A stretch of 64,000 bases of DNA, taken from Lepidodermella squamata. Lineage: Eukaryota; Animalia; Gastrotricha. Positions 10,946 to 15,439 of this stretch are shown piece by piece. The DNA lies in the NCBI GenBank assembly GCA_047495785.1, contig JBLDXI010000017.1, positions 3,782,001 through 3,846,000 of the forward strand. Direction: 5' to 3'. The notes beneath the pieces were generated by a model, which saw only the letters and a program-made list of their open reading frames with translations, had not been told where the DNA came from and ran no database searches. How positions within the stretch are numbered: position 1 is the stretch's first letter; each line of letters opens with the position of its first letter. The position numbers were made by a program, and so were the translations under genes.

Positions 10946-11897
10946 TCACTTCGAGACGCTCTCCTTGAGTCGCATCATTCGCGTGAATTCTGCGAAAAGA
11001 CATTGTAAACATTAAAATTAGGTTCAGGCTAAGTAATAACGCTTTTCCACTTGCCGTTGTAATTGAGTTTTCCATCGCCATCCAGATCAGCCTCTTTGAC
11101 CATCTGTGCCACATCATCGTCTGTTATTTGTTCACCAAGACCTTCCAACACGCTTTTCAGTTCTACCGGGGAGATTAATCCATTGCCATCGCGGTCTAGC
11201 ACCCTGAAAGCCTAAACAAATGTGCGGTGTTAAAGAGTTTTAAATCGGTTATCCAATGTGACTAGACCATTCTGGTTTCTTCCTCTTCGTTCGCCTTGGC
11301 GTACAAGGTCATCATGACGAGAAACTCCGAAAATTCAAGCTCTCCATTTTCTGAGGGAGGAATGAATAATTTTATAGCTCGAATAAAAAAGGTGCGAGCT
11401 CACTGTTCATGTCAAAAGCGTTGATCATGTCCTAAGTAAAAAAAGATAAAGACGTGACCTCGACCGCGCGCTCGAAGTAATTGGTACCTTTAGTTGTTCT
11501 GAAATTTTCCATTAATAACATGTTATTACATGCATTTTTTACAAATTAGTCGAATTCATTACCTGAGTTAGGATCCAAGCCGAGAGATTTCATGACATTT
11601 CCTAATTCTTGCACGGTAATGGTCCCGCTGTTATCTGCAAATGCAACCAATCATCTTCGAATGATTTATATTATAAAACATGGCGATCAAACATACCTTT
11701 ATCAAACAAAGCGAAGGCTTGACGCAGCTCTAAATTCAAATTTTACATTGAGTTCAAAGATGAAAAGAAGTGGGGTATAATGACCATACCTTCGATTTTC
11801 TTTATCGAGAGATCATTTCCAGCCTTGATGCATATAACATATAATAATTAAATTAGGACGAGGATTACCTAACACTGAAAAATAGTTCACTTACCAT
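10946..11897 (-). CDS. Divergent calmodulin-like protein (4 EF-hands), 154 aa, 9 exons (11897-11895, 11823-11790, 11729-11697, 11634-11563, 11498-11488, 11431-11404, 11350-11268, 11211-11055, 10989-10946)
   Basis: Spliced product [154 protein letters not shown]. The first exon is ATG only, as in calmodulins. The last intron is GC-AG. Confidence 0.88.
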
Positions 11898-12207
11898 GCA
11901 GTAAATATGTTAAGCAGTTGGTTGCAACTGTCAATTTGTAATCAACTAGATCAAACGAAAAGAACTGCGTATAAGCGTTTGGCTCCGCTCACCGCTCACC
12001 GTAAATTTGGGTTGTTAACTTGCTAAAAACACTACAACGGCGGGAGAAAATTATTATGGAGAAATCAATAGAAATGCAATCGATACGTAAAATTACTAGC
12101 TGCTTATTGCTTTATAGTCAAATAACCCTAAGGCAGCCGGGAAAATATAACGGGCGAAAATCGCGCGAATAGGAAATTTCCAAGGTGACAAGCTCAGTAT
12201 CTAAGAA

Positions 12208-12306
12208 GTTACCTCAGGGATCGTAGAGCCGACTGCGGTTTAAGTGATACCACAGCCTCCCCGTGGCGGTAACGGGCAACGTATTAATAAGGCAAATGTG
12301 GGTCGC
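12208..12306 (+). ncRNA. HDV-like (delta-like) self-cleaving ribozyme, predicted cleavage 5' of G12208
   Basis: Nested double pseudoknot: P1 GTTACC(12208-13)/GGTAAC(12268-73); P2 GTGAT-A-CCACA(12244-54)/TGTGGGTCGC(12297-306); P3 GCC(12255-57)/GGC(12265-67). L3 is TCCCCGT with the U..G pair, and its CC pairs with GG(12274-75) as P1.1. Then a GCA linker, a short P4, and J4/2 G-C-A-A-A with the catalytic C at 12293. Confidence 0.8.
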
Positions 12307-13649
12307 GTAACGACAAGTTCCCATAAAGGTGGGCTCTTTATGGGTGAAATTTCCTTCGGGGAATTTCAGTGCGTTTATCGCATGTAAAATTCATACCTAG
12401 GGAAGCCTCCACGCGTCGGCTGGTTTACAGTCACTTGAGAGAAATTTTCAGGTTCGGTCTCGGTATACAAACGTCCGTCATCTCTTGCCTTGTCGGGGCC
12501 CCTGTGCTTAAGATGTTCACAACATCTATCTGACTATCTGACTCACCTTCGGGTGTTTCTACCTGTTCCTCACCTAAGAAGTGGGATTTTCCCAGTTAGA
12601 AGAATTATACTGGTCATTTGCCACCTTAAAGGTGACTTGAAAAAGTTAATAAAAGTTTTTGGACTGCGCTAACCATGGCATATTATCGCGATCAAGCGAA
12701 ATAATGATTGAAACGAGCAAACATAATGCCTTGGCATACACGATCTGAAATATCTGGTAACGCGCATATAGAGATGCGTGTACAGACACGTCAGCTAAAC
12801 GGTAAAGAAATAAGAGAATGACTGAGTCTGTTTCTTTGACATCCAGAATTTAGCGGTGCTTTCGCGCTCATTGTTTGCTACAAGCGTTTACTCAAGCGCC
12901 ACATTATTACTGCGGGGGCACGTACAGAATACTAAGCATATTTATGATGAATCTCCACCCTGCCCAGAATACCAATATTACTTTGCTTCTGGACGCAGCG
13001 CGGTTCATTGTTATCAATATTTCCATCACTGCAGGCCATTCTGTTTTTTAGCCATTAGCTCGGTGCATTGAAGTGGATGTCTATCAGAACTCAAGATAAC
13101 GTCTAAATAGCTACGAAACAATATTGGGGATCCTGGAACGTCAGACTTCGAAAATACTTTTTAATATTTTCGCACCGGAGGGCAAAGGAGTCAATATGCG
13201 AGTAGCGAACTGCATGAACATAACATCATATTTATTTTTTTCTCAGCCACCACTGCCATTATAGGTATGTGTTGCGGATAGCGCATTGCTGTTAGCTTGT
13301 AACTGTACGTATGTGCTATTTCTCGAATTTTCACTGAAAAAACCCTTCTACGCATCTTTTTGGTGAAAACATCTTTAGTGAGTCACTCCTGCTTGCAGGC
13401 GAACTTTCAGAGAAACATGTCTTTCACGCCAGTATACACGTCAGCAGATATCGCCAACAGCTGCGACTCCGTTGCCTGAATTCTGACTATGGCCGCTGTG
13501 ATTCGCTGTGCATCCGGGTCCGGCGTCTGGAGGAATGTTATTGAGGTTAGCAGTGACCAAGTTGCAAATTTGTTGAGGAACCAATTCATGTTCAATTATC
13601 ACTTACTACCGGCTCTAACTGCTGATGATTAACGCATAATGGCGTAAAT

Positions 13650-14300
13650 GCAAAAGCGAGAAGTAAAGCTCTGCATGATGCAAATTTAGGGGTAGCTGAG
13701 GTTCCGAGACCAGTGACTCGGGTCAACAATTTCTCCACTCAGGACTCAGGACTACCCAACAGCCAGGTTATCCAGTCAGATGAGCGCCTATTCCACTGGC
13801 TGTTCATAGACTGGTTTTACGATCTCGAAAGAGAATAGTGAGCCATGCCGAGTGGGCTTGCTTAAGGCTTCCGCCGAGGCATCTTGAAACGGAGAGGTAG
13901 GTTTCGCGCTATGGATCCGGTAAAAGGCTATTAGCATCTGGTGGCTAAGATTCCCACCCAGGCAGAGGACCGCCCGGGCCTGTGATACACTAAAACTGCG
14001 GCTTCTTTTCAAAGGCTGCAGTTTCTTCTGTATACAGCATATTCTCAAGAATTGAAGCTTCTTGTCGATCAAAACTCCGAGGTATTTGACAGGGTCGTGC
14101 CATTCGAGGTCACATCCATCTATACCTAGTTGAGTTTCAGACGGCGGAGCCTTATTGTTCGGTTTGAGATCCACAGGCCTTGGCTTTTGCGTGACCGACC
14201 GGCTTTCAGTTTTCAACGACTGAAATAATCTGAGACTTTCTCCAGGCATTCATTCAGCTGGCGTTTTGGAGCAAGGGCCACATCGTAGCGACGTTGAATA
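13650..14300 (-). mobile_element. Degenerate non-LTR retrotransposon (Jockey/I-group-like) RT C-terminus and 3' UTR
   Basis: LEWHDPVKYLGVLIDKKLQF motif, with YDVAL just upstream. A stem-loop GGGTAG...CTACCC lies at ~13690-13758. Boundaries are approximate. Confidence 0.65.
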
Positions 14301-14499: not shown

Positions 14500-15000
14500 T
14501 GTGTAAACTAGTTCGCGCATGGTTTGCGACCCATGCTGTGGCCATGTCGAGAAAGCCGGAGGGCAGCATGTTGTACATTTTCTTCGCCTTCGTTCAGACC
14601 TGTAGTTGCCAGTCGGGCGATTCGATGGGGGTGATCCTCGACAGAATCGATTTTGTCGATTTTGGAATGCGGGGATTGGCACAGCGGCATGATTTCGCGC
14701 TCAAGCATTTCCGCAACACGTTTTTACCACAATGGCCACAATGGCCACACGGAGCTTGCCACGCGTTTTGGAGGTGATCTGCGAAGATCTTTGCAATGCC
14801 AGGATACGCGTAGGTCTCGAGGCCATTTTCATTCTTAGTGATCGATGGGCACTGGCTTGTATTCGAGGCGGTAGAGTTGCTTGCAAGGTTGTTGAACTCT
14901 TTCCAAAAGAGTCTCGCCTTATCGTGGAGCATTTTCGATAGCTTGGTAGATCTACGTTGAATCTCTCCTTCGTGATAAGAGCCTTGACCTTTTTGCTGGC
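14500..15000 (-). mobile_element. LINE family A fragment (endonuclease-RT linker)
   Basis: KMLHDKARLFWKEFNNLASN...AKIFADHL is homologous to segments at 20260-20620 (+) and 25000-25400 (-). Confidence 0.65.
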
Positions 15001-15439
15001 CGCGTTGTATCGGTTTCGCGAAAGGTCTGTGCCGAGCGCCTGAAATCACAGAGTTTTCGATCATGCGACGGGATATCAGCATGTGTGCCAAAGTCGGACA
15101 CGCTAACCAACCGCTAACCAACCCCCTGGTCCGGCGTTTGTGTCCTACCTAACCCTTCTTGTAAGCATCTTGTCTCATCAATGCTGTTTCAAGCCGGGTG
15201 GCCGTATCGCTGGCAATTGAAGCATTCAGTTGAACCACATCTGGTTGCTTGGCCACAAGCCAACGGAATCTTAACATAAATGGCTTGCAGAACAGGCCGC
15301 TTTTCCCACAGTGTTTAGCAAGCAGCAAGATCGTAGTCGTTCAGTACGGACATAGCTTGTTCGCCACCTAGTCATCTTGTCGCCGAAGGCAGTCTTGGTT
15401 TGAGTTTTCGATACCCATATCAACATTCTTCACTATTCC

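Follow-up and report, generated by a model that had tools for sequence, protein, structure and literature searches.

An HDV-like ribozyme motif at the 5' end of a stray copy of a non-coding 28S rDNA retroelement in the gastrotrich Lepidodermella squamata

Delta-virus-type self-cutting RNAs that define the 5' end of a mobile element are already known from R2 elements and from their SIDE parasites. L1Tc/NARTc and RTE elements are dispersed, and their cleavage takes place at the element's own first base. In these elements the 5' HDV-like ribozyme is common to the autonomous LINE and to its non-autonomous derivative (PMC3185411). In many R2 elements, P1 of the ribozyme is formed with upstream 28S sequence and cleavage occurs up to 36 nt upstream of the element; the spacing between P1 and P1' ranges from 23 to >700 nt; P4 can be absent or too short to pair; 5' junctions are uniform when cleavage is upstream, and 28S duplications are found at 5' junctions (Eickbush et al. 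2013, PMC3774820). The non-autonomous SIDEs found in Drosophila 28S genes are either R2 SIDEs or R2/R1 hybrids (Eickbush & Eickbush 2012, PMC3414825).

The window refers to the whole stretch that was analysed, 64,000 nucleotides of L. squamata (assembly GCA_047495785.1, contig JBLDXI010000017.1, positions 3,782,001 to 3,846,000 of the forward strand). It contains a genuine HDV-like motif (12208-12306). The motif does not stand alone: its 99 nt open a 366-bp retroelement without coding capacity (12208-12573). The initial annotation, made from the sequence of the window, had proposed that the motif either heads a ribozyme-SINE or processes a divergent promoter transcript. The former proposal has held: the motif heads an element that codes for nothing, is bordered by a target-site duplication and belongs to a family of ~40 copies. 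The preferred reading, with a probability of about 70%, is that the motif is an HDV-type ribozyme heading a SIDE-type, LINE-dependent element of 28S genes, and that the window copy is an off-target insertion with no local function. By analogy of design, the window element is closest to the R2 ribozyme and to the R2 and R2/R1 SIDEs. The parts of the element are given below in window coordinates.

12201-12209, plus strand: target-site duplication, 5' copy, CTAAGAAGT; overlaps the element leader by two bases, G12208 and T12209
12208-12573, plus strand: whole non-autonomous retroelement, SIDE-like, stray copy; repeat boundary at 12206-12208
12208-12221, plus strand: 28S-derived leader GTTACCtCAGGGAT (28S: GTTACCACAGGGAT), with the 5' strand of P1 inside; predicted cleavage 5' of G12208
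12528-12573, plus strand: 3' tail, hairpin with a TTCG loop, terminal CTGTTCCTCAC; tail type common to copies L023 and L091
12574-12582, plus strand: target-site duplication, 3' copy, CTAAGAAGT; perfect, 9 bp

Over 355 aligned positions the window element is 88% identical to the rDNA copies, whose tail is a homologous hairpin with a different loop and terminal CTGCTCCTCAC. Its own tail is 95% identical to that of L091, and ~60 nt that are present in relatives after the position equivalent to 12526 are missing. No ORF longer than 60 aa is found downstream of the motif, as the initial annotation had stated. The flanks of the element (11950-12205 and 12585-12840) are single-copy in the genome and have no 28S similarity (upstream p 0.67, downstream p 0.88); an rDNA fragment moved as DNA was therefore rejected as the origin of this copy. 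Since GTTACCtCAGGGAT precedes CGTAGAG in the window copy, the latter is taken to derive by reverse transcription from an RNA whose 5' end lay in the 28S leader, and to have landed off target.

All helices of an HDV-like double pseudoknot can be assigned at 12208-12306, in the order P1, P2, P3, P3', P1', P1.1, P4, P2'. Direct reading of the sequence places each helix and each core motif at the coordinates given for it in the initial annotation. All the following features are on the plus strand.

12208-12213 with 12268-12273, plus strand: P1, GTTACC with GGTAAC; perfect complementarity
12214-12243, plus strand: J1/2, 30 nt, contains a hairpin
12218-12226 with 12233-12241, plus strand: J1/2 hairpin, 9 bp; found in the minimum-free-energy fold and in the RNAalifold consensus
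12244-12254 with 12297-12306, plus strand: P2, 10 bp, of which three are G.U; A12249 bulged
12255-12257 with 12265-12267, plus strand: P3, GCC with GGC; encloses L3
12258-12264, plus strand: L3, TCCCCGT; the G at L3 position 6 is present
12259-12260 with 12274-12275, plus strand: P1.1, CC with GG, 2 bp
12274-12280, plus strand: GGGCAAC; GG belongs to P1.1, GCAAC joins P1.1 to P4; agrees with the HDV consensus as aligned by Rfam
12280-12291, plus strand: P4, weak; pairs C12280-G12291, U12282-A12289 and A12283-U12288, mismatch G12281/A12290
12293, plus strand: candidate catalytic C (HDV C75 equivalent), in GGCAAAT (12291-12297), which aligns to the GGC of the HDV models

The core nucleotides are those that an HDV-type ribozyme requires: TCC..G in L3, CC with GG in P1.1, and C12293 followed by AAA before P2'. 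The minimum-free-energy fold of the window sequence is no better than those of shuffles (z -0.52), as is expected of a pseudoknot. The core is similar to that of the genomic HDV ribozyme, the CPEB3 ribozyme and the minimal HDV-like ribozymes (RF00094, RF02682, RF00622), GCCUCCUCGCUGGC-P1'-GGGCAAC...GGC-AA, and the helices follow in the same order. The motif differs from the HDV ribozyme by its first P1 pair (G-C rather than G.U), by a 30-nt J1/2 that contains a hairpin, and by scores below the gathering thresholds; unlike HDV and CPEB3, the window element is mobile rather than a viral or an intronic RNA. Minimal HDV-like ribozymes that lack P4 have been published, and the rDNA variant of the element likewise lacks P4. 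The long J1/2 and the weak P4 pointed out in the initial annotation are both present, and both are normal for ribozymes of the R2 type (PMC3774820).

A descriptor search, which the initial annotation had suggested, was made with a script descriptor (G-initiated 6-bp P1; 3-bp P3; L3 = UCCNNGN; GG after P1'; C-N-AA; 5-bp P2). It gave a single match in the window, exactly at the 12208-12306 motif (12208/12255/12293), and none in 300 dinucleotide shuffles (both strands), a significance that is overstated, as the descriptor was composed after the sequence was seen. At gathering scores, Rfam gave no match in the whole window. On a 321-nt slice, the following Rfam scores were obtained: HDV-F-prausnitzii (RF02682), 24.1 bits (gathering, 44; E 0.015); HDV_ribozyme (RF00094), 15.6 bits (gathering, 50); drz-agam-1 (RF01787), 14.0 bits (gathering, 37). 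The 30-nt J1/2 is too long for the Rfam HDV models, which therefore choose a mismatched P1 at 12246.

Sixteen distinct sequences were aligned: the window copy, three rDNA variants, three stray copies, and members of subfamilies C and D. L3 UCC, P1.1 GG and the catalytic-C column are invariant, and so is most of the core, which is the part best kept across subfamilies of 54-88% overall identity. Variation is greatest in P4, which is fully missing from the rDNA copies. The rDNA copies, presumably the active ones, also have GGATAAC where the other copies have GGGCAAC, and families C and D begin P1 with A opposite C. With the proposed fold, 88.9% of cells pair over the 16 sequences, against 31-55% with slid partners. 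Only three pairs change on both sides, and 38-193 of 500 shuffles reach the observed values; the covariation is not significant, the copies being too alike (77-88%). Across the family, two pairs of the J1/2 hairpin are changed on both sides. In P2 of the window copy, one A-U pair has been deleted simultaneously from both strands relative to the rDNA copies. The RNAalifold consensus contains no more of the fold than the J1/2 hairpin and the outer P2, and it offers a competing pairing of CAACG with UGUUG. As judged from the aligned copies, the proposed fold is compatible with all of them but unproven by covariation.

Other copies, whose search across the genome had also been suggested in the initial annotation, were found in the window's own assembly (121 Mb, 151 contigs). 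About 12 copies, 85-87% identical, share a start at window position 12206, whereas ~25 more match the core only; a covariance model built from the 16-sequence alignment matched 41 genome copies. No diverged, LINE-borne version was found genome-wide by the covariance model. The close copies are located inside LSU rRNA genes with a downstream 5S gene: 12 full copies and one 5'-truncated copy follow ...CAGGGAT, with uniform 5' junctions. The home of the family is one exact 28S site, after ...GTTACCACAGGGAT, in the peptidyl-transferase region. The junction sequence in rDNA is ...GTTACCACAGGGAT/AACTGGCTTGTGG (here and below, the slash marks the junction), which we take to differ from the R2 target sequence. 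In copy L003, the junction is 28S ...AAAAGTTACCACAGGGAT/CGTAGAG; the insert (~400 bp, non-coding) starts CGTAGAGCC and ends CTGCTCCTCAC; 28S resumes with CACAGGGATAACTGGC, the target duplication being 11 bp (ACCACAGGGAT). As GTTACC lies within 28S upstream of the junction, the 5' strand of P1 is host rRNA, 14 nt upstream of the junction.

The intact site (...CAGGGAT/AACTGG) is present in 463 28S genes, and 25 sites are occupied directly after ...CAGGGAT genome-wide. Of these 25 sites, those not taken by the 12 full copies and the 5'-truncated copy of the family hold a non-coding element of 1.5 kb, LINE copies truncated at the 5' end (several) or the 5' ends of full-length LINEs. Every 3' junction at the site has ...CAC before CACAGGGATAAC, with four types of tail. 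The junction-plus-core pattern had no matches in metagenome contigs. The description of the motif in the initial annotation as not attached to any coding retrotransposon is correct for the window copy, but it overlooks that the family is a 28S rDNA parasite, which shares its site with coding LINEs and whose P1 5' strand is itself 28S sequence.

Among the elements of this site is a complete 4.5-kb LINE (L094, G000:C118:13980-18580), with a 1119-aa ORF and a 5' UTR of ~1 kb. The ORF matches RVT_1 (E 3.9e-34), with the reverse transcriptase placed as in L1 ORF2p; near its N-terminus there is a weak, sub-threshold match to an APE endonuclease (Exo_endo_phos_2, E 0.0015). Rfam found no HDV-like motif in the 5' UTR of L094. 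The ~400-bp ORF-less element has in common with the other elements of the site, LINE included, the nucleotide of insertion, the 11-bp duplication and the terminal ...CAC. In blastn comparisons of the small element with L094 and the other elements of the site, only the first 19 nt are shared, 14 of which are 28S. The partner LINE with a common 5' end that the initial annotation had envisaged did not emerge, and no LINE sharing either 5' or 3' sequence with the element was found. Since no sequence is shared beyond 19 nt, it is solely the common site and the junction style that point to a LINE of this site as the probable helper. Three C4 matches were rejected as LINEs, being 5'-truncated copies; L097 and L098 were rejected as full LINEs, being short non-coding copies.

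The 1.5-kb non-coding element (L095, L096 and L098; C122:41780-43330, C27:23890-25450 and C88) shares this 28S nucleotide of insertion. It has a related core, GCCTCCATGTGGCGGTAAC, with GU at the position of P1.1 GG and an interrupted P2. Its 3' tail is like those of L065, L080 and L081.

The family resembles the R2 ribozyme (Eickbush et al. 2013, PMC3774820) in the following respects: an rDNA-specific non-LTR element headed by a double-pseudoknot HDV core; a P1 5' strand supplied by 28S and a short 28S leader kept in the RNA; a long J1/2, a variable or absent P4, uniform 5' junctions and occasional tandem 28S duplications. It differs in its site, located in the 28S peptidyl-transferase region after ...CAGGGAT; in its leader, 14 nt long instead of 28; in the coding elements of the site, which have an L1 ORF2p-like reverse transcriptase and a weak APE match, whereas R2 has a C-terminal restriction-like endonuclease; and in the window copy being devoid of an ORF. 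Like the R2 and R2/R1 SIDEs (PMC3414825), the element is short and non-coding, combines a putative 5' ribozyme with a presumably LINE-recognised 3' end, is found in 28S genes and would propagate by target-primed reverse transcription. In the R2/R1 hybrids, too, an HDV-like ribozyme is coupled to the machinery of a LINE of the APE type, and target duplications are made (PMC3414825). In contrast with the Drosophila SIDEs, the similarity between element and LINE is limited to 19 nt, so that derivation by internal deletion is unsupported; neither site nor host is the same; several stray copies occur outside rDNA, and ~20 copies are found within larger repeats. The family is not R2: it has another site and presumably other helpers. 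Unlike the ribozymes of L1Tc/NARTc and RTE, the one considered here takes P1 from host rRNA, and the family is site-specific.

What the present locus adds to these systems is a record of where the RNA begins: judging by their sequences, the stray and irregular insertions place the RNA 5' end at the predicted cleavage site. The stray copies are located in unrelated DNA, with target-site duplications of 9-14 bp and flanks devoid of 28S similarity. In L014, a 13-bp duplication (one mismatch) is followed by GGTACC; in L023, a 9-bp duplication and five extra nt are followed by GTTACC; the leader of L016 starts GTTACC, as does the window copy, in which 2 nt overlap the duplication. Two copies of the 1.5-kb element are irregular: L096 has a tandem 28S sequence, GTTACCACAGGGAT/GTTACCACAGGGAC, and L098 is inserted 23 nt further into 28S and starts CAGCT+GTTACCACAGGGAT (GTTACC...). 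Taken together, the insertions in the window, L014, L016, L023, L096 and L098 amount to a natural mapping of the 5' end to the predicted cleavage G, G1, at which these leaders start. As this G lies three bases upstream of the boundary of the rDNA duplication, the duplication cannot explain the start of the leader. L015 and L025, in which microhomology to the flank is seen, begin inside TTACC. In L092, a faint likeness to 28S further upstream of the G (p about 0.1) may make this copy an exception.

The mechanism suggested by these data is as follows. The rDNA element would be transcribed within the pre-rRNA. The element would provide P1' (GGTAAC), P3/L3, P1.1, the catalytic C and P2, and the upstream rRNA would provide the 5' strand of P1, GTTACC. 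Cleavage 5' of the G of GTTACC would yield an RNA that begins with 14 nt of 28S. The released RNA would then be copied by the reverse transcriptase of a LINE of the same site, by target-primed reverse transcription, with the 28S leader favouring uniform 5' junctions in rDNA. The window copy would be such an RNA inserted off target into single-copy DNA. With cleavage predicted upstream of P1, no part of the ribozyme is missing from the stray copy.

In the R2 strategy, host rRNA serves as half of a ribozyme helix, by which the 5' end of the mobile RNA is defined and given homology to the target. If the ribozyme is active, the present family is a second, independent setting of this strategy, at another 28S site and with different helper LINEs. 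The stray copies record the RNA 5' end and show how complete, portable HDV-like ribozymes can come to be dispersed among gene neighbourhoods. A broader reading can be proposed only tentatively: an undescribed lineage of rDNA parasites at a peptidyl-transferase-centre site, in which an rRNA-borrowing HDV-like ribozyme serves APE-type LINEs instead of R2 and whose stray copies, the one beside the EF-hand gene included, would each seed a self-contained ribozyme available for co-option. If true, it would be a natural route to CPEB3-like ribozymes.

Three other explanations were weighed against the preferred reading. The one that deserves most attention, although it is judged unlikely, is that the conserved 5' module folds without being catalytic, serving for example as a protective structure or as a signal to the LINE protein, and that it resembles HDV by coincidence or as a relic; the constant GTTACC 5' end would then result, for instance, from an rRNA-processing cut, or from the reverse transcriptase stopping or switching template there by preference. 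The sub-threshold Rfam scores agree with this explanation, as do the lack of significant covariation, the present state of the rDNA copies (no P4, GGGCAAC altered) and the GU found in the related 1.5-kb element instead of P1.1 GG. It leaves unaccounted for, however, the presence in the correct order and at the correct spacing of the 13-nt P3/L3 block, P1', GG, GCAAC and GGCAAA, the score of 0/300 shuffles with the descriptor, and the start of the leader, in at least five events, at the exact nucleotide predicted from the P1 pairing. We know of no rRNA-processing site at the position of the GTTACC leader. A group I intron at the rDNA site, equivalent to E. coli 23S U2449, of which the window copy would be a reverse-spliced or retro-copied form, is excluded for practical purposes. 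Its appeal comes from a hairpin, GGGAU/CGUAG...CUGCGGUUC, that puts a U.G pair at the 28S/element junction as in P1 of group I introns, and from the insertion site, which we take to correspond to a known intron position; the junction U.G pair falls within the J1/2 hairpin. It is contradicted by the 11-bp 28S duplication, which leaves no boundary that would end the 5' exon in U and the intron in G at once, by the stray copies with their 9-14-bp duplications in unrelated DNA, by 5'-truncated copies (L040), by the use of the same nucleotide by coding LINEs, and by the absence of any Intron_gpI match in Rfam even at E up to 10.

The third explanation concerns the place of the window copy, which lies close to a calmodulin-like gene whose EF-hand exons are on the minus strand (11032-11742). 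The stray copy could have been co-opted and could process the divergent promoter transcript of that gene or another local RNA, as CPEB3 does in its intron. All its core nucleotides are intact, its P2 is compensated, and it is located a few hundred bases upstream of the EF-hand gene, on the other strand. Such a co-option is nevertheless very improbable for one of ~40 copies of a mobile family that has a fresh-looking duplication and an internal deletion, the other stray copies being in unrelated places. The processing of a divergent promoter transcript, considered in the initial annotation, is thus unsupported, and the position beside the calmodulin-like gene looks incidental. Under the preferred reading, the insertion is most likely irrelevant to the calmodulin-like locus; the window copy, which has no evident promoter, is most likely functionless in place.

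About 20 copies of the core and of a SIDE-like block are found inside repeats of >3 kb with inverted repeats (family C: L017-L022 and L034; family D: L024-L033 and L035). Their leader is ATTACC+CAAATGAGTGTTA instead of GTTACC+ACAGG, and their P1' is GGTAGC. L017 (family C) has the best Rfam HDV score of the genome, 31 bits, below gathering. These families may be carried along by another transposon, or they may be a lineage that targets some other repeated sequence.

In the window, two minus-strand ORFs are found beyond the element, at 13788-14249 (153 aa) and 14594-15121 (175 aa). The first contains KYLGV..D and is LINE-RT-like by eye. Neither has a match in Pfam; the first may be what is left of a LINE, with no relation to the element. 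A tRNA gene (65 bits) is located at L016:479-552, ~1 kb from the stray copy L016. A 5S rRNA gene is found ~230 bp downstream of 28S on the opposite strand (L003:2729-2847, L009:2730-2848); the rDNA unit of this genome thus has 5S linked to it. The same contig carries an rDNA array from G000:C17:3880864, ~35 kb beyond the end of the window and ~87 kb from the stray element.
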